Shown here: one piece after another, positions 6,015-42,716 of the stretch
How positions within the stretch are numbered: the stretch's first letter is position 1
Layout of the letters: every line of letters starts with the position of its first letter
Sequence record: NC_047713.1
DNA length: 64,000 bases
Direction: 5' to 3' (one strand)
The notes under the pieces: model-generated
Told to the model about the DNA's origin: nothing
Seen by the model: the letters and a program-made list of their open reading frames with translations, nothing else
Database searches by the model: none
Translations under genes and position numbers: made by a program

Positions 6015-6016
6015 CT

Positions 6017-6196
6017 ATGGCTAATAAAAACGACAAAGGCAATCACCCAAGAGAAGAGGGTTGGTTCACCGAAAAGTTGAAGAGAAGACTCAGGAATGAT
6101 CTCATACATCCTGAACATCTAGTTCCCATTCTTATTGAAGAGAATGAGGCACTTAGAGCAGAGATTGCAACACTAAAAGCAATGCATAAATGGTAA
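6017..6196 (+). CDS. Small hypothetical protein (59 aa)
   Basis: Hand-translated ORF that fills the gap exactly. Confidence 0.55.
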   Translation: MANKNDKGNHPREEGWFTEKLKRRLRNDLIHPEHLVPILIEENEALRAEIATLKAMHKW

Positions 6197-6197
6197 A

Positions 6198-7499
6198 ATG
6201 GCAGCATTAAGTTCCACTTCCCCAGGACAACTAGGTAAGTATGTCATCCCCACAGTCCAGAAACTAAATGATGCGATGAAACGCAGAACTAGTCTTGGTA
6301 GGGGGAGTGGTAAGTCTTATACCATTAAGAATACCCCTGCGAATGTGGCAGCTATCAAGGAGTTCTCTCGTATTGGTAGCTCCCCCAAGTCACAGAAAGA
6401 AGCACTTGCTATTAGTCTGCAGACCACTGATACTAAAGTTCCTACTATTACTATCGGCAGTATTGATAAACCTAATATCAAATACAACCTTGGAGATATG
6501 TCCGAGGCTGTAGTTGGTGCTGCTATTGCTGCCAGGTTTATCTACAAGAATAGAAGTATTACGACTTCAAATGTTTATGGTGTTCTATATGGAATGCCAC
6601 CATCATCTAACTACCCAGGGAAGAAGGGAAAATATACAGAGAAGACATTCCAGTCAGTTAATGAAAATAAGAAGGTTACAGATCAAGTTAAGGTGTATAT
6701 CTCCTTAGCTGAGGTTAATATGGCTGCTGTGATGGATAGATCCAATAAGGATCTTATTCTTCCTTATGTTCGTTCTGCAGTCAGATATGCCAATAGTACT
6801 ACTGTTAAGAAGTGGTCCAAACTACTTTATGAGAACAATAGATCAGACAAGATTGATGTAATGTCTGATGGTCTGGGAGGACAAACCACAACTAAAGTGG
6901 ATGTATATGTAAAAGTTAATGATCAGAAAGTAAATATCAATGTATCACTGAAGGCTGGTGATGTCAAACAGTTTGGTCAGGTCTCTGGTATTGAGTTTGA
7001 GAAACAAACTAAACTATGGGAAACCTCCTTTGGTTTTGGTAGTGAGATTAAGAGTCTAGAGTCAAAGTATAACCAGTTGATCTCAGATAAATCAACAGTC
7101 CCACAGGCTGTAACTATGGTGTATCAAGAGGTGGCTAACCTTTTTAATCAAGGTATTAAGAGAGGTGATGCTAGTATGATAAGAAAGTTCGCCAACTCTA
7201 TTAAGTATTTTGCTACACTAAACGAAGATAATGTAACCCTACTACAGGTGGGTAATGACGCGGCAAAGCTCTATTCGTTTGATGATATATACCAAGGAAT
7301 AGAAAACATGCAACTGAACGCCACTGTTACTATGGGTAAAAGTGGTCTCCCAACTTTACTAATAAACGAGACTGCTAGTGGACAACCTCTCATTCAGTAT
7401 CGTGTAAAGCAGGAGTTCAAACCCGATGGGTCTCCATACATCAGAAACTATGTGGAAAAGCAAACTGTTCTAGGAAAACTTATTGGTGAAAACCTCTAG
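6198..7499 (+). CDS. Hypothetical protein, possible PD-(D/E)xK nuclease fold
   Basis: 433 aa; GDMSE..., TTTKVDV...INVSLK pattern. Confidence 0.55.
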   Translation: MAALSSTSPGQLGKYVIPTVQKLNDAMKRRTSLGRGSGKSYTIKNTPANVAAIKEFSRIGSSPKSQKEALAISLQTTDTKVPTITIGSIDKPNIKYNLGDMSEAVVGAAIAARFIYKNRSITTSNVYGVLYGMPPSSNYPGKKGKYTEKTFQSVNENKKVTDQVKVYISLAEVNMAAVMDRSNKDLILPYVRSAVRYANSTTVKKWSKLLYENNRSDKIDVMSDGLGGQTTTKVDVYVKVNDQKVNINVSLKAGDVKQFGQVSGIEFEKQTKLWETSFGFGSEIKSLESKYNQLISDKSTVPQAVTMVYQEVANLFNQGIKRGDASMIRKFANSIKYFATLNEDNVTLLQVGNDAAKLYSFDDIYQGIENMQLNATVTMGKSGLPTLLINETASGQPLIQYRVKQEFKPDGSPYIRNYVEKQTVLGKLIGENL

Positions 7500-7534
7500 G
7501 TGTGTTATAATACCATTGTAGAGATTGCTATTTC

Positions 7535-8434
7535 ATGAAGGAACGCAGAAAGTATCCAACCGTATTGAGGTATCCAGGCGGTAAGTCTAGGATTATCTAC
7601 TATTTGTTTAGGGAAAATATGATCCCTAAGAATGTCAAGGAATACCGTGAGGGTTTCCTAGGTGGGGGTTCTTGTGCTCTTGCGTTCTCTGTGATGTACC
7701 CAAACACCCCAGTTTGGGTCAATGATCTTTACTATAATCTGTTTATCTTCTGGACACAACTCCAGAAGAATCCAGATCCACTTATCAATAGACTCCTAGA
7801 ATTAAAGGACGAAGCCTGTGATGCATCAGGTACAGAAGAACTAGAGAAAAAGCATAGAAAACTCTACACAGATATGCGTGATCTCATTAACACCTCTAGT
7901 GATCACCTTGATATTGCAACCTCCTTCTACATTCTAAACCGATCTAGTTTCGGTGGATTCACTGAACAAAACAAGAATGCCTTCATCCGAGACTCATACA
8001 AGAATACTATTTTCTCTCAGAGTAAAATCCGTAAGTTGGCTAATATCTCTGAGATTATCCAACCCTGGAGAATTACCAATACACACTACAAGGAACTAAT
8101 GAGAGCTCCTGGTGATGATGTATTTGTGTTCCTAGACCCTCCATATCTAATCAAGGATATGTTGTATGGTAAGGACAAGGAGATGCACACTGGGTTCTCT
8201 CATGAAGAGTTTGTGAGTGAGTGTAAAGGTTCTACACATGACTGGATGATTACCTACAATGAACACGAATGGTTGAGATCCCAGTTCGCTGACTATCATA
8301 TGGAGTCTTTCGAGTTCCGTTATAGTCTCGCCCACAGGGAAGAGAATGGCAACAAGAAAGAAGAACTCCTCATAATGAACTATGAGATTCCTCGTGATAT
8401 CCCAAACCCACTAGAGGTAGTTTTGTATGGATGA
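7535..8434 (+). CDS. dam: DNA adenine methyltransferase (Dam/D12 class)
   Basis: LRYPGGKSR, EGFLGGGS motif I, FLDPPY motif IV. Confidence 0.9.
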   Translation: MKERRKYPTVLRYPGGKSRIIYYLFRENMIPKNVKEYREGFLGGGSCALAFSVMYPNTPVWVNDLYYNLFIFWTQLQKNPDPLINRLLELKDEACDASGTEELEKKHRKLYTDMRDLINTSSDHLDIATSFYILNRSSFGGFTEQNKNAFIRDSYKNTIFSQSKIRKLANISEIIQPWRITNTHYKELMRAPGDDVFVFLDPPYLIKDMLYGKDKEMHTGFSHEEFVSECKGSTHDWMITYNEHEWLRSQFADYHMESFEFRYSLAHREENGNKKEELLIMNYEIPRDIPNPLEVVLYG

Positions 8435-8882
8435 TCTAGAGCTAGAGTATCATCTTTATCTGGATGGAAACCCTATTCAGACACTGAAGGATGACGCTAG
8501 TACAATGACTTTAGCCAAGAAGAGAGTTATCGGTCCTTACATTCGTAGAGCTGAATCTTTTATTAAAATATCAGAACCATTTAGGGAACTACTTCGTCTT
8601 GATGATGGTAAGGATAAACTTCTAGATGCAATAGGTGTTGTCTGGGCACACTACTTTGAACATAAGATTAACAAGAAGTATATGGTTATCCCTAAGGATG
8701 CATCTCTTGATTTTATGGAATACTTTGGTACTATGGCACAGAAGGATAAGTTTCCAGATGATAAATATATTAAGAAAGCTCAGCGTATCATTCTCTCTCA
8801 CGAAAAGAGTATTGATGCTTTCATTAAGGCTTTTCATAGTATCCGTTTAGCCAACGACAAATATCTCTCCCTGAAGAAATGA
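8427..8882 (+). CDS. Hypothetical protein
   Basis: ORF track; overlaps both neighbours. Confidence 0.7.
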   Translation: MDDLELEYHLYLDGNPIQTLKDDASTMTLAKKRVIGPYIRRAESFIKISEPFRELLRLDDGKDKLLDAIGVVWAHYFEHKINKKYMVIPKDASLDFMEYFGTMAQKDKFPDDKYIKKAQRIILSHEKSIDAFIKAFHSIRLANDKYLSLKK

Positions 8883-11764
8883 TCACACCGAAGTCCCTAC
8901 TATCATTCCTATCTGAAGCCGCTGATTCTGAGGCTGCACAACAGGCTAAGGAGATGGGTTTAACCTCTGCCGGTTATGGTAACTGGAGAGATAGGACGGG
9001 CAATGTTGTTGCCAAAACTGTAGATGGTCAGTTGGTAATGATTGATGCCAAGGCAGATCCTATGGCTAGACCAGAGGCGCCTGGGGAGGAAATGCCACCT
9101 GAAGAGGAGGAGGAGCCCCAGTTTGTAGAACCAGATCCAGATATGGTTGAGAAAGTAGCTAAGGGTCTTTCTGGTGGTAGATATAATATTGCATCAGCAC
9201 AGAGGAAGAAAGAGTTACTGGCTTCTGCTAGACAGATATTAATCAATAAACAGATCCAAGACGCTCAGATGCAGGCTGACGCTGATGCTCAGGCAGCGGC
9301 ACAAAACCCACCAGAACCCACTCCAGAGGAGTTGGAACAACAACAGGCAGATATGGAACTACAGCAACAGAATGCTGTAATGGATACCGAACTTAAGGCA
9401 CAGAGTGTTGAGAATGGGAAACTGGACCTTCAGATGAAGAAGGACCAGATGAAGCAACAGAAGGAGGCAGAGAAAGAAGCCAAGGCTATGGATAAGTTAG
9501 CCAAGAAGGCAGAAGCACAGAAACAAGCAGAAGCCGATGCACAGGCTCAAGCAGAAGCCGATGCACAGGCTCAAGCGGAAGTTGAAGCAGCCCAACCAAC
9601 TCCAGAGGAGATGGAACAGGAGAAGAGAGATGTTGAAGCAAAGACTGCCGGTGACGCTCTTATCAAGGCATTGCAATCTGGTGATACTAAGGCAGAGAAG
9701 AAGGTAGTTGAGAAGTTCAGAAAGAGAAATGCTCCTAAACCAGAACCTAAGAAGGAGGCATCAGTTCCTGGTGGTGAAGGAACGGCATTTAGTGACCTAA
9801 GAGATTCATTCAGTCAGTTACTAGAGTCTGGTGAGCTCAATAATAAGAAGGGTGAGATTAGTAACCAACAGTATGCTAAACTCAAGGAGAGGTTGGAGAA
9901 CCCAACAGTGGCTCAGATGGCTTCTGAGTTTATGGATGAGCACCGTAAGTTATACTCTAAAGAGAATATTCGTAACTTTGAAAAGACAGGAACTTTCAAG
10001 GATGTTGATGGTGCTATGTCCTTTATGGAAAATACCCTAGGTATGGTTAGGAACAAGAAGGGTAGATTGGTATTTGGTGATTTGACTCCAGCACAGAGAA
10101 TTGCTATGGGGGATAGTCCTGGTGAGGGTGTGGGTTTCCGTGAGTTCCGTGGAATGGATTTCTATCAACAACAGGCACTTCAAGACCCCAAAGTTAGAGG
10201 TATTCTTGACAATGTTATTGGTGGCACAGCACAACCAGAGATTACCTACAATGACAGAAGAAACTTCCAACAGGGTTATTTAAAGAATAATATCAGTACT
10301 GAAGATGCTAGATCCATCTATGACCAGTTAGATCCTAAGATTCAGAGAGCTATTGATAATATGGGACAACCTGAGAGAGCTCAGGGTATCTTTGCTCCTG
10401 ATGCTGGATCCACACTTGAGTACTTTCAAGATGGTGGTAAGATGTCCGGTGATACTGATCTCGATATGATGATGAATGACCCAGAATCAAGAGAGGAATT
10501 CCTATCAAACTTCACCACAACTAGAGCTCCTGACCAAGAACGGGGTGTTATGGTCCTTCAGAGACTCCTAAACACGGGGTTTAAGGACCAAGCTACTGGT
10601 CTTCCTCTGTTTGGTGGTCTAAGAGCTGTAACTGCTGATCATGTTGTTGGTAGAAGGCAGGCATCTAATGACCCCCTCGACTATCCTCTAAACTTGGCAT
10701 TTGTTGCCAGAAACCTAAACCAGTTCAAGAGTGGAAACTCCGCTCAGTATGGTGATGATAGTTTCAACAAACTAGTCAATAGTGACAATACAAACATATT
10801 TGAGAGAAACTTCGACCCAGAAACTGCTTGGTATGCCAAGAGACTCCTAGATAGTCACTTTGAATCTGATAGACTAGAGAAAATGATGGGTATTGAACCA
10901 GCTGATTCTGGTCCAGAAGCTGTCTTCCCTGACACAGTACAGGCTCTAGAGACTGTAGATAGTAAATTCGTTGAGAACTTAGCTAAGAGGGGTGGTGCAA
11001 CTAACCCACTAGGACTAAACATCGCAAACCTAACCAAAGCTCCACCAAGACCTCAAGGTAAAGGTGAGCAACAACTAGGTAAGAACACCTGGAGAGGTAC
11101 ATCTGGTAACGGATATGGTGGAACTCAACAATATCTTGATGGATATCGTAAATCTGCTATCTACAATGTGATGCAGAGTCCTGACCTTAATACTGAAATT
11201 GATCTCCTCAAACAGAAGATGCAAGGTAAGCCACCAGCTAAGATTGAAGAGGAGATCAGGAAGGCTAGAACCAAGTATGCTGAAAAGTATATTAAGATTC
11301 CACAACAGGGTATCAGTTCTATCTACGGACTTGGTAGAATATCCAATAAGGAGTATGTAGATTGGTTCAGAAACCAGGGTATGAAGGGTCTAGAGGGTAT
11401 GAAAGAGACCAATCCTGATATGTATAATAAGATGGTCCTGGACCTTAACAACGGTCTTGACAAGTGGGAGAAGAAGTTAGGTTCTATGGTTAATGGTGAC
11501 AGACCCTATGAGTTCCCACAGGGGGATCCAAAGGTCCTAAAGTCAATGAACGATGAGTGGGGTAGGCAGGCTATGAAGTCCGCTGAGGCTAGGAAGTACC
11601 TATCCGAAGAGGAGATCAACCGTTTCTACGAAACCATTAAGAATCCTGAAGATTGGGCAGAGCCTATGGGTGAGGGGTTGACAAACGACTCCGGGTCTGT
11701 TATACTAGAGAGGTTAAAGCGACTGAGGAAACCTCTAAATGCCACAGAAGACAGACAGTCTTAA
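8879..11764 (+). CDS. 961-aa protein: N-terminal module shared with the nucleotidyltransferase, Q/E/A coiled coil, and internal HNH-like segment
   Basis: N-terminus SFLSEA..AKEMGLTSAGYGNW; internal DQATGLP..TADHVVG..NLAFVARNLNQFK. Confidence 0.7.
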   Translation: MITPKSLLSFLSEAADSEAAQQAKEMGLTSAGYGNWRDRTGNVVAKTVDGQLVMIDAKADPMARPEAPGEEMPPEEEEEPQFVEPDPDMVEKVAKGLSGGRYNIASAQRKKELLASARQILINKQIQDAQMQADADAQAAAQNPPEPTPEELEQQQADMELQQQNAVMDTELKAQSVENGKLDLQMKKDQMKQQKEAEKEAKAMDKLAKKAEAQKQAEADAQAQAEADAQAQAEVEAAQPTPEEMEQEKRDVEAKTAGDALIKALQSGDTKAEKKVVEKFRKRNAPKPEPKKEASVPGGEGTAFSDLRDSFSQLLESGELNNKKGEISNQQYAKLKERLENPTVAQMASEFMDEHRKLYSKENIRNFEKTGTFKDVDGAMSFMENTLGMVRNKKGRLVFGDLTPAQRIAMGDSPGEGVGFREFRGMDFYQQQALQDPKVRGILDNVIGGTAQPEITYNDRRNFQQGYLKNNISTEDARSIYDQLDPKIQRAIDNMGQPERAQGIFAPDAGSTLEYFQDGGKMSGDTDLDMMMNDPESREEFLSNFTTTRAPDQERGVMVLQRLLNTGFKDQATGLPLFGGLRAVTADHVVGRRQASNDPLDYPLNLAFVARNLNQFKSGNSAQYGDDSFNKLVNSDNTNIFERNFDPETAWYAKRLLDSHFESDRLEKMMGIEPADSGPEAVFPDTVQALETVDSKFVENLAKRGGATNPLGLNIANLTKAPPRPQGKGEQQLGKNTWRGTSGNGYGGTQQYLDGYRKSAIYNVMQSPDLNTEIDLLKQKMQGKPPAKIEEEIRKARTKYAEKYIKIPQQGISSIYGLGRISNKEYVDWFRNQGMKGLEGMKETNPDMYNKMVLDLNNGLDKWEKKLGSMVNGDRPYEFPQGDPKVLKSMNDEWGRQAMKSAEARKYLSEEEINRFYETIKNPEDWAEPMGEGLTNDSGSVILERLKRLRKPLNATEDRQS
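9524..9576 (+). repeat. 24-bp coding tandem repeat (x2.2)
   Basis: CAAGCAGAAGCCGATGCACAGGCT repeated exactly; encodes QAEADAQA. Confidence 0.9.
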
Positions 11765-31521: not shown

Positions 31522-31548
31522 ACCACCTCCTCATGGGGGTGGTTTTTT
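31522..31548 (+). terminator. Rho-independent terminator
   Basis: ACCACCTCC-tcat-GGGGGTGGT plus T-run. Confidence 0.75.
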
Positions 31549-31910: not shown

Positions 31911-32909
31911 ATGAAAGCTTTAATCTCTGGAATTACAGGTCAAGATGGATCCTATCTTGCTGAACTTCTACTTAAGAAGGGGTATGAAGTCCATGGTATT
32001 ATTCGTAGAACCTCCTCGTTTAATACAGGAAGAATTGATCATATCTTTGACCGAATACACCTCCACTACGGGGATTTGACTGACTCCCTGAACATAGTCT
32101 CTATCATTAAGGAAGTAGAACCTGATGAGATCTACAACCTAGGGGCACAGAGTCATGTGAAGGTATCATTCGAGATCCCTGAATACACTGCACAAACAGA
32201 CGCTCTGGGAACTCTACGAGTATTGGAAGCAGTCCGTCTCCTAGGTATGGAGAATAGAGTTCGTATCTATCAGGCTTCCACTAGTGAGTTGTATGGATTA
32301 GTTCAGGCAGTTCCACAGAAAGAAGATACCCCATTCTATCCACGATCCCCATATGGTGTAGCGAAACTCTATGGTTACTGGATTATAAAGAACTACAGAG
32401 AGAGTTATGGGATGCACGCTAGTAGTGGTATCCTATTCAATCATGAGTCGCCACGACGGGGTGAGACCTTTGTAACTCGTAAGATTACTAGGGCACTCTC
32501 TCGTATCAGTACAGGACTACAAGATGTTCTCTACCTAGGTAACCTAAACGCCAAGAGGGACTGGGGACACGCAGAGGACTTTGTAGAGGCTATGTGGTTG
32601 ATGCTCCAACAGGATAAACCTGATGACTATGTGATTGCCACCGGGGAACAATACTCAGTTCGTGAATTTGTAGAGGCATCTGCTGAATACTTTGGTATGA
32701 AGATTGAGTGGCAGGGTGAGGGATTAGATGAAGTGGGTATAGATAGATTCACTAAGAAAGTCGTTGTTCGTGTCAGCGATAAGTATTTCCGTCCAGCAGA
32801 AGTTGAGTCTCTCTGGGGAGATCCTACCAAGGCTAAAGAGGTATTAGGTTGGGAACCTAAGCATACCTTTAGTTCTTTGGTTGAAGATATGTGTATTTAC
32901 GGTCAGTGA
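31911..32909 (+). CDS. gmd: GDP-mannose 4,6-dehydratase
   Basis: [43 protein letters not shown]. Confidence 0.95.
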
Positions 32910-32911
32910 TT

Positions 32912-33838
32912 ATGAAAAAGGGTTCAACGGTAGCAGTATTTGGTTCGGGTGGATTGGCTGGAAGTGCCATCACCAGGGCACTCAGGTGTTCCTTTATGGC
33001 ACATAAGATTCTTACCCCTAGGAGTAAGGAACTAGACCTAAGAGAACAGGCAGATGTTCGTAGTTGGTTTAAGGAGAACAAAGTTGATTATGTATTCTTA
33101 GCCGCCGCCCTAGTTGGTGGTATTATGGCTAACAAGACTAGAAAGGCAGAGTTCTTACACGACAACCTAATGATGCAGTGTAATGTAATTGACTCTGCAT
33201 ACTATAGTGGAGTAAAGAAACTCCTATTCTTAGGTACCTCTTGTATCTATCCAGCAGGAAGACACCATCCACTAGTGGAACATGAACTACTCACAGGACT
33301 ATTAGAACCAACCAATGACGCATACGCAATCGCAAAGATCGCAGGGATCAAACAATGTGACTTCTACCGAGAACAATATGGATTTGATGCTATCTCTATC
33401 ATGCCTCCTAATCTATATGGTCCTGGAGATAATTTCAATGAGGGATCAGGACATGTCCTCGCCTCATTGATGAATAGGTTTCACCTAGCGAAGGAAGCAG
33501 GTGCATCTAGAGTTGAATGTTGGGGTGATGGATCACCTATGAGGGAGTTTCTATATGTGGATGACTTAGCAGATGCTTCCTTATACTTTATGAATAGTTA
33601 TAGTGAGTCTGGGCACATTAATACTGGGACTGGTAGGGATGTAACTATCAAACAACTAGCGGAGACTATTGCTGATGTAGTTGGATACAAAGGTGAGATA
33701 GGTTGGGATACAACTAAACCCAACGGAAACCCAAGGAAACTACTTGACAGCAGTAGGGCAAACCTGTTAGGATGGGAACCCAAGGTTAAATTTGAAGACG
33801 GAATCAAACTCACATACAACTGGTATCTAGCACAATGA
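32912..33838 (+). CDS. fcl: GDP-4-keto-6-deoxy-sugar epimerase/reductase (Fcl/WcaG or ColC type)
   Basis: GSGGLAG, LGTSCIYP, YAIAK, PPNLYGPGDNF, GHVL. Confidence 0.88.
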   Translation: MKKGSTVAVFGSGGLAGSAITRALRCSFMAHKILTPRSKELDLREQADVRSWFKENKVDYVFLAAALVGGIMANKTRKAEFLHDNLMMQCNVIDSAYYSGVKKLLFLGTSCIYPAGRHHPLVEHELLTGLLEPTNDAYAIAKIAGIKQCDFYREQYGFDAISIMPPNLYGPGDNFNEGSGHVLASLMNRFHLAKEAGASRVECWGDGSPMREFLYVDDLADASLYFMNSYSESGHINTGTGRDVTIKQLAETIADVVGYKGEIGWDTTKPNGNPRKLLDSSRANLLGWEPKVKFEDGIKLTYNWYLAQ

Positions 33839-35028
33839 CAAAGATTACAAATGGATATACGTGGCCTCTTATGAAGGACACTGTGACCAAGAGAGATAGG
33901 TTGAGGATGGCAAAGTTTATCCTCACCAGTGATAGACTAACACAAGGTAAAGAAGTTCGTAAGTTTGAGGAGCAGTGGAGTGAGTGGCTTGGAGTTAAAC
34001 ATTCTCTTTTTGTTAGCAGTGGCAGTACCGTTAACCTACTTCTTGTGTCTGCTTGGAAGGAATTATACGAGATCCCAGACCAGTCGAAAGTAATTGTACC
34101 TGCTTGTACTTGGGTAACTAATGTTGCTCCTATCATCCAGTGTGGTTTGACTCCAATCTTTTGTGACATCAACTTAGAAGACTACTCCTTTGATCTGGAT
34201 AAACTACAGGATATTCGTGATGAATATCAAGATGACATTAGAGGTATCTTTGTTACTCACCTCCTAGGATTTCCTGCTAATGTGGAAAAGTTTCGTGATG
34301 TTTTCCCCGACGCTCATATTCTAGAAGATGTATGTGAGAGTCACGGAGCAGTCCTCCCTAGTGGTGATAAGGCGGGAACCTTTGATGTTGGTGGCACATT
34401 TAGTTTCTACTTTGGGCACCACATGACTACCATTGAAGGTGGTATGGTGAGTACTAATGATCCAGAACTCTATGATCTAATGAGAATGAAGCGTTCTCAT
34501 GGGTTAGCGAGAGAATCACTATACTTTGAAACATACAAAGAGAAGTATCCTGATGTAAATCCACAGTTTCTCTTCGTTACTGAGGGATATAACTTCCGTA
34601 ATACTGATCTAGCTGCTGTATTAGGACAGTCTCAACTGAAGAGACTAGACAGTATGATTGGGATTCGTAACAGGAACTATGAGTTATACCAACAATTACT
34701 AAAGAAACACGAACATGACCTTACACATGAGTATGGTGGTTCTTTCTATATCCCCTCCACACAGGGGGATGTAAGTAGTTTCTGTTTTCCATTTGTAGTT
34801 GATAATATGCACTGTTATCTTAAGTTAAAAGAACTTCTAGAAGAATACTATGTTGAGTATCGACCTATTGTGAGTGGTAACCTCCTACGACAACCATTCT
34901 TGAGAGAATATTCTGCTGAGTGTCCCAAGGCAGATATAGCCCATGAAAAGGGACTATATATTGGGAATAATCACTTTGTAGATGAGTCTAACTTTCACAT
35001 GTTAGATGAGATTTTGAGCCAACTTTGA
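33835..35028 (+). CDS. PLP-dependent DegT-family enzyme, ColD-type GDP-4-keto-6-deoxymannose 3-dehydratase
   Basis: VSSGSTVNLL, EDVCESHG, GTFSFYFGHHMTTIEGG (His where aminotransferases have the PLP Lys); no E1-type Fe-S Cys cluster. Confidence 0.75.
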   Translation: MTKITNGYTWPLMKDTVTKRDRLRMAKFILTSDRLTQGKEVRKFEEQWSEWLGVKHSLFVSSGSTVNLLLVSAWKELYEIPDQSKVIVPACTWVTNVAPIIQCGLTPIFCDINLEDYSFDLDKLQDIRDEYQDDIRGIFVTHLLGFPANVEKFRDVFPDAHILEDVCESHGAVLPSGDKAGTFDVGGTFSFYFGHHMTTIEGGMVSTNDPELYDLMRMKRSHGLARESLYFETYKEKYPDVNPQFLFVTEGYNFRNTDLAAVLGQSQLKRLDSMIGIRNRNYELYQQLLKKHEHDLTHEYGGSFYIPSTQGDVSSFCFPFVVDNMHCYLKLKELLEEYYVEYRPIVSGNLLRQPFLREYSAECPKADIAHEKGLYIGNNHFVDESNFHMLDEILSQL

Positions 35029-35029
35029 T

Positions 35030-35824
35030 ATGACATTTTCATTTAATCATATGGGCAACTTGGGGCATCTGGGAAACCAGATGTTTCAGTATGCCGCACT
35101 CATTGGTATGGGGGCTAAGCATGGGAGGAGTATTTGTATCCCCCATAAACAAAGTTTTGGGCAATCATACTACCAAGAACTTCGTAGTAATATCTACGAT
35201 GCCTTCAACCTCTCACCTAATGGTGTAGGTATCAGTAGGTTCCCCACAGTTCAGGAAGGTAGTTTCCACTTTGATGAGAACTTATTTGAGAACCCACCAG
35301 ATGAGAACTGTAACCTCTATGGATTCTTCCAGAGTGAAAAGTGGTTCTCACATATCAAAGAAGGTATTAAGAAAGAGTTCACTCTAAAGGATGAATACCG
35401 GGAAGTGGCACAACTGATGAGAGAACAACTCTCTGGTCAGGTTGTTGCTATTCATGTTCGTAGAACTGACTACCTATCCAATCCAAACCACGGAGCATTG
35501 GGTTTAGATTACTATGAGAAGGCACTGGAGTTGGTTCCTAATAACCTTACAGTAGTTGTATTCACTGATGATCCAGAGTGGGCTAAAGAACAACCACTCT
35601 TTCCAGATGATAGGTTCTTTGTATCAGAGACAGACTGTCCCTATACAGACCTTGCTCTTATGAGTATGTGTGATTATCATATTATTGCCAACAGTTCATA
35701 CTCTTGGTGGGGTGCATACTTATCTGATAGTAAGAAAGTAATTGCTCCTAAACAGTGGTTTGGGGAACCACTTAAAACAAATAACCTGAAAGATCTTTAT
35801 TGTGATGGGTGGGTGAAACTATGA
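35030..35824 (+). CDS. GT11 alpha-1,2-fucosyltransferase-like glycosyltransferase
   Basis: GHLGNQMFQYA, FFQSEKWF, AIHVRRTDY, IIANSSYSWWGAYL. Confidence 0.9.
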   Translation: MTFSFNHMGNLGHLGNQMFQYAALIGMGAKHGRSICIPHKQSFGQSYYQELRSNIYDAFNLSPNGVGISRFPTVQEGSFHFDENLFENPPDENCNLYGFFQSEKWFSHIKEGIKKEFTLKDEYREVAQLMREQLSGQVVAIHVRRTDYLSNPNHGALGLDYYEKALELVPNNLTVVVFTDDPEWAKEQPLFPDDRFFVSETDCPYTDLALMSMCDYHIIANSSYSWWGAYLSDSKKVIAPKQWFGEPLKTNNLKDLYCDGWVKL

Positions 35825-36444
35825 GTAACTTTGCAAGTGCTAAACAGTTTATCAAGAATGGTATTGATACACAACAGGAGTCTATCTCTGGTGGTGGCAG
35901 CACTATGGCTTCCACAGTTGCCTTCAGATACTTCCTACCAAAGTATATCAAACAGTATGGTATTGAGAGTATCTTAGACATTGGGTGTGGTGACTGGCAT
36001 TGGATGTCTACTATCAGAGAAGAGTTTCCTGATGTAGACTATGAGGGATGGGATGCCTCTGAGGATATGATTAATCCCATGACTGAGAAGTATGGAACAG
36101 AGAATACCAGGTTTGAGGTAAAGGATATCATTGATAACAAGTATCCCAAAGTGGATTTGGTTATCGCTCGTGATGTTCTATTCCACCTCAAAGAGGATTA
36201 CCTACAGAAGGTTCTCAAGAATATCAGTAAGGCGGGTGTGAAGTATCTACTAGCAACTACCTTTCCAGGTTTACCTAAGAACGAAGAACTCACTCCTAAG
36301 AAATATGACGGTTGGGGATTCAGACCAATCAATCTGGATATCGAGCCTTATAATATGAAAGATTATTGTATTAATGATTTCAAGGAAACCACAGCTCCCA
36401 ACAGAGGGTATCATCGTCATGTGTATTTGTATGAGGTAAAATGA
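35821..36444 (+). CDS. Class I SAM-dependent methyltransferase
   Basis: ILDIGCGDW, YEGWD, DLVIARDVLFHL. Confidence 0.85.
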   Translation: MSNFASAKQFIKNGIDTQQESISGGGSTMASTVAFRYFLPKYIKQYGIESILDIGCGDWHWMSTIREEFPDVDYEGWDASEDMINPMTEKYGTENTRFEVKDIIDNKYPKVDLVIARDVLFHLKEDYLQKVLKNISKAGVKYLLATTFPGLPKNEELTPKKYDGWGFRPINLDIEPYNMKDYCINDFKETTAPNRGYHRHVYLYEVK

Positions 36445-36593
36445 AGATCGAAATTGAACTCTCTAAAGATGTAGAATACAAAGGAGAGAAACTAGGTGAG
36501 TATATCTGGAACCTAGAAGAGGGAATTAATCATGTTACTGGTTTTGGTGATTCACTTGAGGAATGTTTTAAGGAAATTGTGAGGTTTAGATGA
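36441..36593 (+). CDS. Small hypothetical protein (50 aa)
   Basis: Hand-translated; ATGA overlaps on both sides. Confidence 0.55.
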   Translation: MKIEIELSKDVEYKGEKLGEYIWNLEEGINHVTGFGDSLEECFKEIVRFR

Positions 36594-37321
36594 AGAAAGT
36601 AGCTATTATCTTTATTGGAACTGGTAGATACCTAGAGTTTCTACCAAAGTATTATGAACAGGCAGAAGCAAACCTCTTCCCCGACAGACCCAAACACTAC
36701 TATGTGTTTACTGATGGTGACTTAGGTAATGAACTACCTGATAATGTAACTGTATACGAACAGGAACACCTTCAATGGCCATACATCACCCTCTATCGTT
36801 TCGGTATTATCCAGAAACACCTAGAGGAGATTGAGAAGGAGTGTGGTTTCCTACTCTTTATGGATGCTGATACACAGGTAGTATCCCCTGTATCGTTTGA
36901 TGAAGTATTCAGGAAGGGAAAACCCTATACAGGTGTTCATCACCCCTGCCACGCCCTGAATATGCCACCACACAATGAGTTTCCTGGTAGTCTAGAAACT
37001 AATACAGCATCCAAGGCAGCATGTAAACCTGGTGATGACTTCTCTGTATATTGGCAAGGTTGTGTATGGGGTGGAAACATAAAGGGTGCTCGTAAGATTA
37101 TTGATACTCTCCACCACAGAACTAAACAAGATGAGGAGAATGGAATCATTGCCAAGTGGCATGATGAAAGTCATATCAATAGATACTTCCTTGATAACAA
37201 AGATAAGGTGAATACCCTATCACCTAGTTTCGCATACCCAGAGTCCTTCACTGAGTATATGGAAGACTACGAACCTAAGATTGTACACCTAGCAAAAGAG
37301 AATTCTAAGTATCAGGTATGA
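36590..37321 (+). CDS. GT6 (ABO-like alpha-1,3-Gal/GalNAc transferase) family glycosyltransferase
   Basis: FIGTGRY, YYVFTD, WPYITLYRF, FMDAD (DXD), YWQGCVWGG, WHDESHINRYF. Confidence 0.88.
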   Translation: MKKVAIIFIGTGRYLEFLPKYYEQAEANLFPDRPKHYYVFTDGDLGNELPDNVTVYEQEHLQWPYITLYRFGIIQKHLEEIEKECGFLLFMDADTQVVSPVSFDEVFRKGKPYTGVHHPCHALNMPPHNEFPGSLETNTASKAACKPGDDFSVYWQGCVWGGNIKGARKIIDTLHHRTKQDEENGIIAKWHDESHINRYFLDNKDKVNTLSPSFAYPESFTEYMEDYEPKIVHLAKENSKYQV

Positions 37322-37941
37322 GTTACTTCACAGATTATGACAACGAATTCACAGTATTTGAGGCACCAAAGAACGGGGGAACTACTCTCCGTCTTTGGAT
37401 ATACTACGCAGGAACAGGGGAGTTGGTGAAGTCAGCGGAGTCTGAATACTACGCTGGAACTGGTGAAACATACAAACAACTCCAAGAGTGGGGTTATGTG
37501 AATGGGGAATATGAGAACCCTAAGACTCAGATGGTATGTATCAAGAGGGACCCTGTAGATAGGTTTGTAAGTGCCTTCTATGATAAGGTAATCAAAGAGG
37601 GGAGAATCAAAGTAACCATCGATGAGTTTCTCTCAAACTATGAAGAGATACTTGATAAGTCTACCCTCAAGATGAATGATGGTAAGACTAACTTCATGAA
37701 GTTTCACTTTGAGTCACAGACATATCACTTTGGTAAAGATAGAGATCTATATCATAAGGTCTTTGATATCTCAGAGGTCGGTACTGGTTTGAAGAAGTAT
37801 CTGGAGGGTAAGTGGAATATAGAACTACCTGATGTCCATGCTAGAAATAGTGGTGGTGGTCGGAAGTTTGATCTCTCCAGGGGACAACTGAATAAGGTGA
37901 AGGAAATCTACACACAGGACTATTATAATGGCTGGTACTGA
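37318..37941 (+). CDS. Sulfotransferase family 2 protein
   Basis: PKNGGTT 5'-PSB-like and RDPVDRFVSAF 3'-PB motifs. Confidence 0.75.
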   Translation: MSYFTDYDNEFTVFEAPKNGGTTLRLWIYYAGTGELVKSAESEYYAGTGETYKQLQEWGYVNGEYENPKTQMVCIKRDPVDRFVSAFYDKVIKEGRIKVTIDEFLSNYEEILDKSTLKMNDGKTNFMKFHFESQTYHFGKDRDLYHKVFDISEVGTGLKKYLEGKWNIELPDVHARNSGGGRKFDLSRGQLNKVKEIYTQDYYNGWY

Positions 37942-38713
37942 AGGATATATCCTGATAGGTATTGGTGATAGGTATCTACAGATGACAGAGAACCTCACTA
38001 AAACTCTAAAGAAACATGGAGATAATAGAGGATCCCTAACTATCACAAGATCGGATAATAGGGAACTCTATAGTGAGTGCAACACTGAGTTTGAGAGGAA
38101 TGGAACTCTACCTAAGATTACCTTAGATAGATACTTACCTTTTGATCACAATATATTCCTAGATGCTGATATGTTATGTGTAGGTGATACACAACATGTA
38201 TGGGATCTATTCAGGAGTAGTGATCAGTTTGTTCAACAGGTAGGATGTTTGGGAAGAGATCCTAACTTCCACGCTCACCAGTATGAGAGTGAGTTGGGTT
38301 TTGAGATTCCTAGAGTCCATGGTGGTTGTATCTACATCAATAGAGAGAAACTAGACCCAGAGTTCTTTCCCTATATGAGAGAGTGTTTCCTAAACTATAA
38401 ACAAATATTTCATAATAGTGGTCTAACCTATAAGAATAGTAGACCAGACCAACCACTATACGCTCTAGCAAATGGTATGTGGGGATTCAAACCTGTGGAT
38501 CTATACACTAACCCTATCATGACTATTGTGAATGATAGCACCCCACCCCCACTAGATAGTGTGTTCTTCAATAAGAAGAGGGGTCCTAAGTTAGATACTC
38601 CTGTTCCTTTTGTTCATGTATTCCGTGGAGAAGAGGGTATGTCTAAGGGTTATACTAGAGGTGACCAGAAGATGTTGTTGTCCCATTATGATTACTACCT
38701 GAACTATGAATAA
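37928..38713 (+). CDS. GT-A glycosyltransferase (GT8-like)
   Basis: IFLDADML, HGGCIYI, DQP. Confidence 0.65.
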   Translation: MAGTEGYILIGIGDRYLQMTENLTKTLKKHGDNRGSLTITRSDNRELYSECNTEFERNGTLPKITLDRYLPFDHNIFLDADMLCVGDTQHVWDLFRSSDQFVQQVGCLGRDPNFHAHQYESELGFEIPRVHGGCIYINREKLDPEFFPYMRECFLNYKQIFHNSGLTYKNSRPDQPLYALANGMWGFKPVDLYTNPIMTIVNDSTPPPLDSVFFNKKRGPKLDTPVPFVHVFRGEEGMSKGYTRGDQKMLLSHYDYYLNYE

Positions 38714-39494
38714 AACTATATGGATGTGTTGGTTCCAGGGTTGGGATAAGGCACCAGAGATTACAGAGAAGTGTTTAGAGTCCTGGAAACACTACAATAG
38801 TGATTGGGATATTGTTCTACTAGATGAATCCAACTACAAGGATTACATCTCCATTGATAAAGAACTACCAGGACTGAAGACAAACTATATCTCACTGGGT
38901 GATATCCTCCGTCTCTTTCTACTAAAAGAGCATGGTGGAGTATGGGCAGATGCAACTATCTTCTGTAACAAACCAGTGGATTGGGTTTTGGATTATGAGG
39001 ATTCTTTCATCTTCACCAGGAAGGATAAGATGATTGCCTCTTGGTTTGTTGCTGCTCAGAAAGATTCCCATGTTGTAGATGTATGGTATAATAAGATGTT
39101 AGAGTTCTGGAAGTATCGTATGGAAAATACAGATACTTTCGAGCAACAATATGGTTGGATACACGCTTTGTTCCGTCAGTCCTACGCTCAGGATAAGGGG
39201 TTCAGGGATATTGTAGATAGTATGGATAAGATTGATTGCATGAGTGATGGTCAATCTAGAGGTAAGGGTCCGCACTTCTTTGCACCCTACAGTAAATACT
39301 TCTACAACCCTATCAGTGACACGATAAAGAATCGTATAGACTCTAAAGTTGATCCACTATATAAGTTGTCTTACAAGGCAAACACAGACTGGAGAAGTCC
39401 AGAGAACAGGGGTATCCACCCAGCAGACCAAAAGATTATGTTGGAATATCCAACTAACAGTGAACTACATTATCTACTCAACACATTAAAATGA
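38706..39494 (+). CDS. Capsular polysaccharide synthesis / GT32-like glycosyltransferase
   Basis: KTIWMCWFQG..P..CLESWK, DILRLFLLKEHGGVWADAT. Confidence 0.85.
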   Translation: MNKTIWMCWFQGWDKAPEITEKCLESWKHYNSDWDIVLLDESNYKDYISIDKELPGLKTNYISLGDILRLFLLKEHGGVWADATIFCNKPVDWVLDYEDSFIFTRKDKMIASWFVAAQKDSHVVDVWYNKMLEFWKYRMENTDTFEQQYGWIHALFRQSYAQDKGFRDIVDSMDKIDCMSDGQSRGKGPHFFAPYSKYFYNPISDTIKNRIDSKVDPLYKLSYKANTDWRSPENRGIHPADQKIMLEYPTNSELHYLLNTLK

Positions 39495-40396
39495 CAAATA
39501 AATCATTGGTTACCGGTGGCGCGGGTTTCATCGGGTCACATATTGTGGACCGACTTATTACACTAGGACATCAAGTCGTAGTGATTGACAATGAATCCTC
39601 TGATGGTCATGATGAATACCATTGGAACAGAAGCGGACAAGTACAAAACCATAAGGCAGACATTCGTGACTACGATGCAATCAAACACTTGTTTGGTGGA
39701 GTCAATAATGTTTTTCACCTTGCCGCTAAAGCATCAGTACAGGCGTCAGTAGATAACCCCCTACCAACTATTGCCACACAGGTAATGGGAACCGCCAATG
39801 TATTGGAGGCAGCACGACAATCTGGTGTGAGTAAGTTTGTATATTCCTCTACGAGTGCCTGTTACGGCAACAACAACCCCATTCCTAATGTAGAAACGAT
39901 GAGAGAAGACCCTCTCAACGCCTACGCTATTGGTAAGTTATCTGGGGAACAACTAGTTCGTGCCTATCACTACCTCTATGGTATGAAGACGGTGGCATTC
40001 CGTTATACCAATGTATATGGGGAGAGGGCAAGACATGTAGGACACTATGCTCCTGCTGTTAGTAAGTTCCTAAAGATGAGAGCACAGGGAGAACCCCTAA
40101 CTATCTTTGGTGATGGTGCCCAACGCCGGGACTTTATTCATGTATCTGATGTAGTCAACGCTAACTGCTGTATTACCTATGAGGAACTAGAGCAGTGGGG
40201 TGAGACCTATAACATTGGTTATGGTAAGAACTGGAGTATCCAAGAGATCGCAGACTCTATCAGTCAGGAACAGATTCACCTATCTGCTCGTACTGGTGAG
40301 ATGCGTGAGACGCTTGCTGATATTGGGAAGGCAAAGGCAGAGTTGATGTGGAAACCAAAGACTGACATCATGGATTGGATTAGGGTACAACTCTGA
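39491..40396 (+). CDS. NAD-dependent nucleotide-sugar epimerase/dehydratase
   Basis: VTGGAGFIGSH, HLAA, YSSTSACYG, YAIGK, RRDFIHV. Confidence 0.9.
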   Translation: MTNKSLVTGGAGFIGSHIVDRLITLGHQVVVIDNESSDGHDEYHWNRSGQVQNHKADIRDYDAIKHLFGGVNNVFHLAAKASVQASVDNPLPTIATQVMGTANVLEAARQSGVSKFVYSSTSACYGNNNPIPNVETMREDPLNAYAIGKLSGEQLVRAYHYLYGMKTVAFRYTNVYGERARHVGHYAPAVSKFLKMRAQGEPLTIFGDGAQRRDFIHVSDVVNANCCITYEELEQWGETYNIGYGKNWSIQEIADSISQEQIHLSARTGEMRETLADIGKAKAELMWKPKTDIMDWIRVQL

Positions 40397-41013
40397 TGCC
40401 AGTATTTCAGAAGGACAACAAGAAAGTTCTATTCATCCATGTTCCCAAGACTGCAGGAAGTTCTGTGAATAAACTCTTTGTGAATAATGGATATGAAATG
40501 TCCTACTATTCTGAGAGTTCTAAAGATCTATACAATGGATTATGTGGACCACAACATCTGGACTCACTTCTATTGGAAGATGAGTTCCAAGATTTCTCTC
40601 AGTTTGATTATATCTTCTCTATCTTCAGAGACCCAGTAGACAGACATCTATCTGAGTTCACCTGGGCACCCTGGGGACTAATGGGTAGAAACATCTACAC
40701 ACCAGAAAGATTTGATGAGTGGTGTCCTAAGATATTCAGAGCGTATCAGGACTCACCATATAGGATGGATAATCACATTAGACCTCAACATGAGTTCTAT
40801 GTCAATGGATGTGATGTGTATGACTATGAAAATATCAATACACTCACAGAGAAACTATGTGATAAAATAGGTCTAGATAATAAAGAGATGCCATATGAAA
40901 GGTCTTCACGATATGATAGTGAGGATTATGTCATCTATGAAGATACTTACAATTGTATTACTGAATTTTACAAAGGAGACTATCAATGGCAAAAGGATTC
41001 AGTCCTGTTGTGA
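40396..41013 (+). CDS. Sulfotransferase family 2 protein
   Basis: FIHVPKTAGSS and FRDPVDRHLSEF. Confidence 0.82.
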   Translation: MPVFQKDNKKVLFIHVPKTAGSSVNKLFVNNGYEMSYYSESSKDLYNGLCGPQHLDSLLLEDEFQDFSQFDYIFSIFRDPVDRHLSEFTWAPWGLMGRNIYTPERFDEWCPKIFRAYQDSPYRMDNHIRPQHEFYVNGCDVYDYENINTLTEKLCDKIGLDNKEMPYERSSRYDSEDYVIYEDTYNCITEFYKGDYQWQKDSVLL

Positions 41014-41864
41014 CTAAGGATAAGAACAAGTCCCAGTTCAAACTACAGGGTGTTCCTAGGATTTACTACATCAGTTTAGATGATCATGCTCATCGTCAAG
41101 ACTATATGGAGTCCCAGTTTGAAGACTGGGGCATCACTAACTTCGAAAGAATCTCTGCTCATGATGGTAGAGGTGATAATGATCTGAGTGATATTCTCAA
41201 AGGATCTTATCCAAAGATGATGAGTTCTGGTGAGGTTGGTTGTGTAACCTCTCACCTAAAGGCACTAAAACACTGGTTAGATACTACAGAGGGTGAAGAG
41301 TTTCTCCTTATGATGGAGGATGATTGTGATATCTCCACTGCTTCCCACTGGGGGTTCTCCTGGAGAGAGTTTGTTGGGAATATTCCATCCCATGTAGATT
41401 GTGTTCAGTTGGCAGTTATCAACCCGGCAGAACTACATATCAAACTCCATATCAGGTTTGTGAATGATTTCTCCACTGCCTCATACCTAATCCGTAGATC
41501 ACACGCAGAGAAGTTAGTTAGACTCTATTGTAGGGGTGATAAGTATAAACTTGATAGTGATATCAAACCCAGAGCAGTTGCTGATGATCTTATCTACAAC
41601 TCTGGTGTGACTCTTGCTATGCCTCTATTTGCCTTCAAGATTGCACTAGGTTCCAGTATCCATGATGTCCATATCAATACCTTCCACAAGAGTAGTCATG
41701 ATGGTATCTGGGAGTTTTGGAAGAAAACAGCACCAACTATTGAGAACTGGAAACCATTCTTCAACTATGATGCCTATCTGGGAACCCTACCACCCAATGT
41801 TGTGGTTCAACAATGGCAGCAAAAACAGGAATCCAAAGCAAAAGATTCAGGGGCTTCGCAATAG
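40986..41864 (+). CDS. GT25 glycosyltransferase
   Basis: IYYISLD..RQDYM, FERISAHDG, GEVGCVTSHLKAL, MMEDD. Confidence 0.85.
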   Translation: MAKGFSPVVTKDKNKSQFKLQGVPRIYYISLDDHAHRQDYMESQFEDWGITNFERISAHDGRGDNDLSDILKGSYPKMMSSGEVGCVTSHLKALKHWLDTTEGEEFLLMMEDDCDISTASHWGFSWREFVGNIPSHVDCVQLAVINPAELHIKLHIRFVNDFSTASYLIRRSHAEKLVRLYCRGDKYKLDSDIKPRAVADDLIYNSGVTLAMPLFAFKIALGSSIHDVHINTFHKSSHDGIWEFWKKTAPTIENWKPFFNYDAYLGTLPPNVVVQQWQQKQESKAKDSGASQ

Positions 41865-42682: not shown

Positions 42683-42688
42683 TATTAG

Positions 42689-42716
42689 AAGGAGGGTTTG
42701 ATACCCTCCTTTTTTT
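42689..42716 (+). terminator. Rho-independent terminator
   Basis: AAGGAGGG-tttgata-CCCTCCTT plus T-run. Confidence 0.8.

Follow-up and report, generated by a model that had tools for sequence, protein, structure and literature searches.

A predicted GT11–GT6 glycan-capping line in a sugar-decorating gene unit of Synechococcus phage ACG-2014f

Introduction

In bacteria that mimic blood-group antigens, such as Escherichia coli O86 (an alpha-1,2-fucosyltransferase with WbnI) and Helicobacter mustelae (Hm2FT with BgtA), an enzyme of family GT11 makes the H-type acceptor that an enzyme of family GT6 then builds up into a determinant of B or A type (PMC12723683, PMC3516806). The closest known system is the lipopolysaccharide ("LPS") cluster PSSM2_257-271 of the Prochlorococcus phage P-SSM2, whose GT6 has been discussed by Brew, Acharya and co-workers. 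Here we examine a GT11 gene and a GT6 gene within a 64-kb stretch of DNA (the window), which is 100% identical to the corresponding part of NC_047713/KJ019058, the 223,270-bp record of Synechococcus phage ACG-2014f_Syn7803C8, a 223-kb T4-like cyanomyovirus of the Kyanoviridae; subtraction of 124000 from a record position gives the window position. An original prediction, made from the window's letters and open reading frames (ORFs), had proposed that these two genes form an assembly line for a blood-group-like epitope of galactose (Gal) or N-acetylgalactosamine (GalNAc) linked alpha-1,3 to a galactose that also carries alpha-1,2-linked fucose (Fuc) or colitose (Col).

The background on which that proposal drew is borne out by the literature: vertebrate GT6 enzymes possess an Asp-X-Asp (DXD) motif and use a metal ion, whereas BoGT6a of Bacteroides ovatus has Asn-X-Asn (NXN) and is metal-independent, and GT6 genes in cyanophages are not new, the DXD motif of a cyanophage GT6 having been described already in 2012 (PMC3516806, PMC3961637). 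Phage GT6 enzymes of this type have been proposed as the origin of the vertebrate ABO family, and they lack the membrane-association domain found at the C-terminus of bacterial O-antigen GT6 enzymes (PMC3516806). A further point of reference is PaGT6 of Parachlamydia acanthamoebae, used in the literature as a functional proxy for the P-SSM2 GT6, which needs Mn2+ or Mg2+ and accepts the H trisaccharide or 2'-fucosyllactose, though not N-acetyllactosamine (LacNAc) (PMC3516806). Islands for "cell-wall modification" are a common annotation in cyanophage genomes, yet none has a known product; modification of the host surface is the favoured hypothesis for such clusters (PMC9602691, PMC12801897).

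The GT11/GT6 pair itself has been annotated before and is known in related phages. The 2014 GenBank records of the ACG-2014f population already name a "glycosyltransferase family 11" and a "glycosyltransferase family 6", and to a specialist the pair will be unsurprising. What the present analysis adds is a survey of GT11–GT6 linkage, a natural fusion of the two enzymes, and a second clade of DXD-type GT6 proteins. Our overall reading, to which we assign a probability of roughly 0.6, is that GT11 and GT6 would be working enzymes of one phage sugar-decorating operon.

Identity of the two glycosyltransferases

Both ORFs lie on the + strand at precisely the coordinates first proposed. The GT11 ORF (35030-35824) encodes a 264-residue protein that matches PF01531 (Glyco_transf_11) at E 3.8e-28 and 99 bits, well above the cut-off of 23.9, and that carries the family motifs GNQMFQ, HxRRxDY and SxxSWWxAxL: HLGNQMFQYA at residues 13-22, IHVRRTDY at 141-148 and NSSYSWWGAYL at 221-231. 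In an alignment of 24 relatives, G15, N16, F19, R144, D147, N221, S222, W226, W227 and L231 are invariant. A sequence search of the PDB gave spurious matches to repeat proteins only; an AlphaFold2 (AF2) model of high confidence (predicted local distance difference test, pLDDT, 92.8; predicted TM-score, pTM, 0.92), submitted to Foldseek, retrieved fucosyltransferases alone among the top 50 matches, namely FUT8 (E 6.5e-8), NodZ, POFUT1, AtFUT1 and POFUT2, which places the modelled fold in the FUT8/NodZ/POFUT superfamily of GDP-fucose transferases. The protein is thus a predicted alpha-1,2-L-fucosyl/colitosyl-transferase, and its presumed transfer to beta-Gal reflects what is known of the family.

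The GT6 ORF (36590-37321) encodes 243 residues, of which residues 8-220 match PF03414 (Glyco_transf_6) at E 3.5e-21 and 75.7 bits (cut-off 25). Homology to solved GT6 structures extends over the full length of the protein, with BoGT6a (4ayj) aligning at E 2e-27 over residues 3-232, and with more distant matches to the human ABO transferase (E 5.6e-17) and to the alpha-1,3-galactosyltransferase alpha3GT (E 1e-11). The predicted DXD motif is found as FMDAD at residues 90-94, and the WHDESHINRYF segment at residues 190-200. At 174.2 bits the protein falls below the 250-bit cut-off of the NCBIfam subfamily NF041524 (family 6 glucosyltransferase). It thus belongs to the GT6 family but lies outside that subfamily, consistent with its separate clade, and is a predicted retaining alpha-1,3-Gal(NAc) transferase with a minimal catalytic domain.

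Linkage of GT11 and GT6 across viruses and cells

We searched 36 viral (IMG/VR) and 39 cellular (GTDB) GT6 loci with each of twelve cluster proteins. A GT11 homologue lay within 10 kb of GT6 at 29 of the viral and 28 of the cellular loci; when GT6 sequences were collapsed at 80% identity, the counts became 17/21 and 24/33, with the two genes directly adjacent on the same strand in 11 and 15 of these collapsed sets, respectively. The runner-up companion, Gmd, accompanied GT6 at 7/21 viral and 6/33 cellular loci, and the remaining cluster genes were rare or absent outside cyanophages. The cellular loci were gathered with a single peptide pattern (IIAKWHDE) and do not amount to a census; nothing follows from the lack of picocyanobacterial hosts among the matches. 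Because the GT6 identities among the surveyed loci are mostly 30-35%, the linkage has survived long divergence.

The two enzymes also occur as a natural fusion. On a contig of a giant-virus metagenome-assembled genome (MAG; IMGVR GVMAG-M-3300024261-33, positions 5932-9276 of locus L028), a 1114-residue ORF contains GT6 at residues 588-832 (102 bits) followed by GT11 at residues 916-1087 (49 bits); its N-terminal portion of ~590 residues gave zero Pfam matches. There is thus strong comparative support for the view that GT11 and GT6 act on the same glycan, and the survey and the fusion likewise support the proposal that the products of GT11 are the acceptors of non-vertebrate GT6 enzymes. The proposed line, in which GT11 would act before GT6 to give Gal/GalNAc-alpha1,3(Fuc or Col-alpha1,2)Gal, accordingly finds backing in linkage and fusion and, as described below, in acceptor residues, selection and gene coupling.

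Active site and phylogeny of the phage GT6

Residues of the phage GT6 were matched to BoGT6a numbering by pairwise alignment, with residue roles according to PMC3516806 and, for the catalytic and metal-binding residues, also PMC3961637. The metal site is of the Asp-X-Asp form, D92-A93-D94 standing in the same columns as BoGT6a N95-A96-N97, and DXD is present in all but one of the viral relatives; by analogy with PaGT6 and the vertebrate enzymes (PMC3516806), the phage enzyme would be expected to require Mn2+ or Mg2+. Both catalytic elements are in place. W190-H191-D192-E193 correspond to BoGT6a Trp189/His190/Asp191/Glu192 and are invariant in a 13-sequence alignment, and K236, reached by ungapped extension 5 residues past the HMMER alignment, falls in the BoGT6a Lys231 column and is kept in nearly all relatives.

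At the acceptor site, position A1 is His118, equivalent to BoGT6a His122, which binds Gal O4 (His233 in the human A transferase, GTA; Gln in alpha3GT), and Tyr154 is equivalent to BoGT6a Tyr153. At position A2, BoGT6a Gly124, fucosyl-acceptor enzymes carry Gly or Ser, alpha3GT a Trp, and the phage enzyme a small residue, Cys120. Position A7, BoGT6a Ile228, is Ala in GTA and in the human B transferase (GTB), and in alpha3GT it is a Trp that blocks 2'-fucose; the phage residue, His233, is neither the Ala/Ile of fucosyl-acceptor enzymes nor this Trp. Taken as a whole, the residue profile suggests an enzyme for 2'-substituted acceptors with an unusual A7.

The donor pocket is equally distinctive. 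Discrimination at the C2 group involves GTA Leu266/Gly268 and GTB Met266/Ala268, the latter pair being visible in our ABO alignment, and the corresponding triplets are L-G-G in GTA, M-G-A in GTB and H-A-A in alpha3GT. In alpha3GT, His280 illustrates that a polar residue at the 266 position can bond the donor 2-OH. The phage triplet is Q156-G157-C158, where the BoGT6a equivalents of the outer residues are Ala155 and Gly157. The triplets of 70-odd relatives sort into classes: x-G-G is found in BoGT6a, P-SSM2 and the chlamydial relatives, x-G-A in many Firmicutes and A-A-A in one phage group, whereas Q-G-C is the class of the window's enzyme and always occurs with His at A7. Since a residue bigger than Ala at 268 leaves no room for an N-acetyl group and the 2-OH can be bonded by a polar side chain at 266, we somewhat favour UDP-Gal over UDP-GalNAc as the predicted donor.

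A maximum-likelihood tree of 57 distinct GT6 sequences, a data set that comprised neither vertebrate GT6 sequences nor PaGT6 itself, divides in two with support of 99/96. On one side is a 17-row clade that holds all viral Q-G-C/His sequences, the window's among them (one member is Q-A-C/His), together with two sequences from MAGs of DPANN archaea; on the other are all the remaining sequences, namely the P-SSM2 group, the DXD sequences of chlamydiae and others, and those of NXN type from bacteria. The window's GT6 therefore belongs to a second DXD clade, deep and mainly viral, that is separate from the P-SSM2/chlamydial type and of which no characterized member was found in the data set or in the literature searched. 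The two archaeal sequences (L039 and L040, from Pacearchaeota/Nanoarchaeota MAGs) are DXD-type GT6 proteins with His at A7 that nest inside the otherwise viral clade; they may represent gene transfer or viral contigs binned into the MAGs. The sole viral GT6 relative found without DXD is a 559-residue GT2-GT6 fusion ORF (L037:9125-10804) with NSN in its place.

Supply of donor sugars

As the original prediction claimed, genes for donor-sugar synthesis lie directly upstream of the pair. Gmd, a GDP-mannose 4,6-dehydratase (31911..32909, + strand, with the start of RefSeq gp220), matches the TIGR01472 equivalog at 556.7 bits (cut-off 415) and PF16363 at E 6.5e-152. It is followed by an Fcl-like epimerase/reductase resembling GDP-L-fucose synthase (32912..33838, +), which scores 420 bits against NF047922, under the cut-off of 500, and which shares 50% identity (309 bits) with the colanic-acid Fcl of E. 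coli. On this basis synthesis of GDP-fucose appears well supported.

The third gene (33835..35028, +) encodes a DegT-family, pyridoxal/pyridoxamine phosphate (PLP/PMP)-dependent protein whose closest solved relative is ColD of E. coli O55 (2gms; E 2.4e-50 over 359 residues), a perosamine synthase matching at E 2e-25 only. Its GHH motif aligns with the S-H188-H of ColD, a position confirmed by the H188N mutant entry 3b8x. Because a His here replaces the Schiff-base Lys seen in aminotransferases, sequence comparison identifies the protein as a GDP-4-keto-6-deoxymannose 3-dehydratase, with its substrate supplied by Gmd. Synthesis of GDP-colitose is probable, and would depend on acceptance of the 3-deoxy intermediate by the Fcl-like enzyme, the sole candidate for the C5-epimerase/C4-reductase step carried out by ColC and one that may thus also finish colitose. 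A ColC-like reductase had been expected here, an expectation that was dropped when the Fcl-like protein turned out nearer true Fcl than O55 ColC (38-39% identity, 209 bits); after the same comparison, a formulation of colitose instead of fucose gave way to one in which fucose is certainly possible and colitose probable. Related phage loci contain this Fcl family with ColD in some cases and without it in others.

Nor did sequence comparison single out the phage GT11 as a dedicated colitosyltransferase: the alpha-1,2 transferase of E. coli O55 is 32% identical to it, no closer than GT11 genes located beside plain Gmd/Fcl. The O55 enzyme, WbgN, uses GDP-colitose as donor and tolerates GDP-fucose well (PMC12723683), and "fucose or colitose" proves to be the right level of claim. 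Farther downstream, a 4-epimerase-like short-chain dehydrogenase/reductase (SDR; 39491..40396, +) for UDP-hexoses or UDP-N-acetylhexosamines (HexNAc) has UDP-glucose 4-epimerase 4zrm as its nearest solved relative (E 5.7e-50), then the UDP-N-acetylglucosamine (GlcNAc) 4-epimerases WbpP and WbgU (E ~1e-43), and scores 176 bits against TIGR01179, under the cut-off of 262. It is likely a source of UDP-Gal or UDP-GalNAc.

The 13-gene unit, its expression and its conservation

GT11 and GT6 reside within a string of 13 + strand genes at 31911-41864. The spacing of 0.8 kb noted at the outset holds, with 765 nt between the GT11 end (35824) and the GT6 start (36590). This interval is not intergenic: it is occupied by an S-adenosylmethionine (SAM)-dependent methyltransferase (35821..36444, +; PF08242, PF13649 and PF13847 at E 1e-10 to 1e-8; phrog_3382) and a 50-residue ORF (36441..36593, +; RefSeq gp225; phrog_3687, E 3.9e-39), each of which overlaps its neighbours on either side by ATGA. 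Within the window's GT6 clade, these two genes stand between GT11 and GT6 in the ACG-2014f lineage only.

Junctions among the 13 genes range from -28 to +2 nt, and seven are ATGA overlaps. Strong terminator-like hairpins on the + strand occur only before the unit, at 31522..31543 (a 9-pair stem with 6 GC pairs, then the T-run TTTTTATT), and well after it, at 42687..42713 (an 11-pair stem, then a T-run, after the hli and ferredoxin genes); the former likely marks the end of the preceding transcript. A promoter scan of the sequence yielded 30 sigma-70-like sites against 36 expected, and none stood out. Gene overlaps and terminator positions are indirect evidence, and they suggest that GT11 and GT6 are co-expressed in one translationally coupled unit.

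Downstream of GT6 the unit continues with a first sulfotransferase-like gene (37318..37941, +; PF03567, E 1.3e-6), whose product has the motifs APKNGGTT and KRDPVDRFVS for binding of 3'-phosphoadenosine-5'-phosphosulfate (PAPS). The next product (37928..38713, +; 261 residues), annotated "hypothetical", had zero matches in a Pfam search; an AF2 model built from a 20-sequence alignment (pLDDT 93.4), in which D79-A-D81 is invariant, found LARGE1, LgtC, GlyE, glycogenin and XXYLT1 as its top Foldseek matches, and we are confident in predicting from this model a GT8-like retaining glycosyltransferase of the GT-A fold. Its roughly 20 close metagenome relatives include none with a function name. Also annotated "hypothetical" is a GT32-like glycosyltransferase (38706..39494, +) with Caps_synth (PF05704, E 6e-41) and DXD sugar-binding (PF04488, E 1.6e-8) matches. 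After the 4-epimerase come a second sulfotransferase (40396..41013, +; RefSeq galactose-3-O-sulfotransferase; PF03567, E 5.8e-8; phrog_3347) with PAPS motifs HVPKTAGSS and FRDPVDRHLS, and a GT25 glycosyltransferase of the LPS beta-glycosyltransferase family (40986..41864, +; PF01755, E 2.7e-11). The unit thus encodes five glycosyltransferases, two above RefSeq naming, along with one methyltransferase and two sulfotransferases. Two sulfotransferase-like genes with PAPS-binding motifs thus sit in a glycan unit of a lytic cyanophage, whose glycan may therefore be sulfated. Elsewhere in the record, far from the cluster and outside the window, one more glycosyltransferase, a GT2, is found at 215692-216024 of NC_047713 (71 bits).

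Comparison with another ACG-2014f genome (KJ019097) revealed 157 synonymous and 39 non-synonymous codon changes across the 13 genes, with synonymous to non-synonymous counts of 8:0 for GT6 and 8:2 for GT11; both genes are under purifying selection. The cluster is present in 45 ACG-2014f population genomes at 98-100% identity. Given this conservation, the synonymous excess and the intact catalytic motifs, gene decay can be discounted. The head of the operon behaves differently in one comparison: Gmd (31911-32909) differs at 130/999 nt from its counterpart in a second ACG-2014f genome (L086, 212-1210), where the next eleven genes differ by ~1% or less, a pattern suggestive of a patch of recombination or gene replacement. 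Similarly, in IMG/VR locus L003, ColD is 82% identical and its neighbours 98-99%.

The acceptor problem

Profiles for priming phosphoglycosyltransferases (PF02397, PF00953), Wzx-type flippases (PF01943) and Wzy polymerases/ligases (PF04932) gave zero matches in the whole 223,270-bp phage record; the same searches gave matches in 9-13 of 14 control genomes. The phage therefore does not encode a complete O-antigen cluster of the kind found in E. coli O86 or O55, and from the absence of these functions it follows that it has no means of initiating, exporting or polymerizing a glycan and that its enzymes must cap an acceptor already in the cytoplasm. GT25 and the 4-epimerase are a plausible source of the beta-Gal on which GT11 would act. 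The cluster itself lies ~1 kb upstream of a tail-fibre gene, amid the host-like auxiliary genes hli, ferredoxin and psbA.

Proposed pathway and alternative explanations

A pathway can be assembled in which the donor, transfer, cap and acceptor-identity steps draw on family knowledge and comparative genomics. During infection, Gmd and the Fcl-like enzyme would convert host GDP-mannose to GDP-L-fucose, the ColD-like 3-dehydratase would probably also give rise to GDP-colitose (3-deoxy-fucose), and the 4-epimerase would furnish UDP-Gal. GT11 would place fucose or colitose alpha-1,2 on a terminal beta-galactose; GT6, holding its UDP-sugar through a divalent metal at D92-A-D94 and with Glu193 as catalytic residue, would then link a galactose-type sugar alpha-1,3 to that galactose, Gal being predicted over GalNAc because Gln156 and Cys158 stand where GalNAc-using enzymes have a small residue and Gly. 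The product would be a blood-group-B-like trisaccharide cap that the methyltransferase and two sulfotransferases probably modify further, on an underlying chain that GT25 and the GT8-like and GT32-like enzymes probably build or branch. With the missing machinery, these enzymes would have to decorate a pre-existing cytoplasmic acceptor, of which the likeliest is a host lipid-linked envelope glycan, so that the surface of the infected cell would be altered; phage structural proteins are the alternative.

Several observations weigh against this reading. The BoGT6a acceptor contacts Thr134 and Phe125 are not conserved, being replaced by Pro132 and His121; no enzyme of known specificity has the Gln/Cys pocket or the A7 His, and both donor and acceptor predictions are thus extrapolations; the reductase is nearer true Fcl than E. 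coli ColC, and completion of colitose is an assumption; and GT11, at 32% identity, is no nearer the colitosyltransferase than other GT11 enzymes are. In addition, the missing membrane-association domain of GT6 fits a soluble or protein acceptor equally with a lipid-linked one. This last point bears on whether the glycan is instead built on phage structural proteins, a serious though unlikely alternative: the lack of priming transferase, flippase and polymerase, the soluble, minimal-domain appearance of all the phage transferases, the absence from phage-type GT6 of an O-antigen membrane-association tail (PMC3516806) and the nearby tail-fibre gene would all suit virion glycosylation, and there is a precedent in mycobacteriophage virions glycosylated by phage-encoded transferases (Freeman et al. 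2023, as cited in PMC12801897). However, the literature searched contained no evidence for glycosylated cyanomyovirus virions, the cluster sits amid hli, ferredoxin and psbA outside the structural module, and published opinion leans towards host-surface modification, itself a hypothesis (PMC9602691, PMC12801897). That the same line operates with GalNAc, to yield an A-like cap, we regard as unlikely. Both PaGT6, a DXD enzyme, and BoGT6a are GalNAc transferases (PMC3516806), and the phage epimerase is nearly as near to WbpP and WbgU as to the UDP-Glc 4-epimerase; yet GalNAc users have Gly at GTA position 268, BoGT6a and the P-SSM2 and chlamydial DXD relatives are all A-G-G, and Cys158 and the polar Gln156 of the window's GT6 resemble the bulkier or polar residues of Gal users.

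GT6 and GT11 might also be independent enzymes with separate acceptors, brought together by co-inheritance in a glycan island. The methyltransferase and small ORF do separate them in ACG-2014f, no GT11 lies within 10 kb at 7/36 viral and 11/39 cellular GT6 loci, and the His at A7 is found in no characterized fucosyl-acceptor enzyme. We nevertheless consider independence improbable: GT11 alone among the cluster genes tracks GT6 over viruses, bacteria and archaea at 30-35% identity, the two are frequently adjacent and once naturally fused, and His118 and the small A2 residue are of the fucosyl-acceptor type. Moreover, the prokaryotic GT6 enzymes assayed in the literature searched (BoGT6a, PaGT6, BgtA and WbnI) all take a 2'-fucosylated acceptor (PMC3516806, PMC12723683), and PaGT6 is inactive on LacNAc (PMC3516806). 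Highly improbable, in our estimation, is that the transferases modify phage DNA or that the genes are non-functional, decaying cargo. One cyanophage paper speculates that phage glycosyltransferases glucosylate DNA (PMC12801897), but GT6 and GT11 are glycan-on-glycan enzymes with UDP-Gal(NAc) and GDP-6-deoxyhexose donors, and the conservation described above speaks against decay. More speculative than the reading preferred here, and rather doubtful, is an extension of it in which the Q-G-C/His clade has a specificity unlike that of any characterized GT6, and the cluster makes a sulfated, methylated, colitose-bearing B-like glycan on the virion or the infected cell; such an enzyme might, for instance, act only on galactose that carries colitose or another modification, or take its sugar from a donor different from UDP-Gal and UDP-GalNAc.

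Implications

For islands without a known product, the preferred reading of the ACG-2014f unit as a sugar-decorating operon offers an unusually full and testable prediction: a Gal-alpha1,3-[Fuc/Col-alpha1,2]-Gal cap, the donors for it, dependence on a metal, and the probable addition of methyl and sulfate groups. Should this be borne out, a lytic marine phage would be rewriting a surface glycan, with bearing on superinfection, adsorption to debris and recognition by grazers. The tree also separates two deep DXD GT6 clades, and the debate on the origin of vertebrate ABO has so far dealt with just one of them; were the distinct-specificity extension true, the second clade would become a new candidate in that question. 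For enzyme users, the Q-G-C/His clade constitutes a pool of small GT6 enzymes predicted to be soluble.

Comparison with known systems

The P-SSM2 cluster occupies the same genomic position as the window's unit, with hli, ferredoxin, a large fibre-like gene and psbA following downstream, and shares Gmd (76% identity), Fcl (55%), GT11 (42%; PSSM2_265), GT6 (30%; PSSM2_268), the 4-epimerase (50%) and GT25 (60%, at the same position). As in the window, a methyltransferase lies directly upstream of GT6, albeit with no detectable homology to the window's, and the P-SSM2 GT6 is likewise a DXD-type minimal domain (PMC3516806). P-SSM2 additionally has GT1/GT2 and 2-oxoglutarate (2OG)-oxygenase genes, whereas a search of its cluster at E <= 1e-4 over at least half of the query gave no ColD-like, sulfotransferase or GT32-like match. 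The window's version is set apart by a ColD-like gene, two sulfotransferases and the GT8-like and GT32-like transferases, and its GT6 differs in clade and in pocket, the A-G-G/Ala signature of P-SSM2 falling on the other side of the 99/96 split from Q-G-C/His. PaGT6 is similarly a prokaryotic DXD enzyme with a minimal domain but is a GalNAc transferase (PMC3516806), and the chlamydial relatives recovered here are A-G-G/Ala and cluster apart from the window's clade.

The bacterial blood-group mimics, together with the GT6 of B. ovatus, provide the functional model for the phage pair, and many cellular GT6 loci have GDP-fucose genes nearby, as the window does. Their GT6 enzymes are NXN, metal-independent and equipped with a C-terminal membrane-association domain, in contrast to the DXD minimal domain of the phage, and they reside in full O-antigen clusters, which in the Wzx/Wzy type (e.g. 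E. coli O55) include a flippase and polymerase that the phage does not have. E. coli O55:H7 is the nearest parallel for colitose: its ColD is 33% identical (E 5e-51) to the phage ColD-like protein and has the same catalytic His, and its WbgN is a GT11-type alpha-1,2 transferase like the phage enzyme. O55 has no GT6, so its colitosylated galactose receives no A/B-type extension, whereas the phage does encode a GT6. Finally, human FUT1/FUT2 and GTA/GTB belong to the same two CAZy families and act in the order proposed for the phage pair. The human proteins differ in being type II membrane proteins of the Golgi that have stem regions, sequence similarity is remote (65 bits), and the donor pocket is L-G-G or M-G-A in place of the phage Q-G-C; human ABO and the phage GT6 nonetheless share the DXD motif, the WHDE catalytic segment and the equivalents of His233 and Tyr264.

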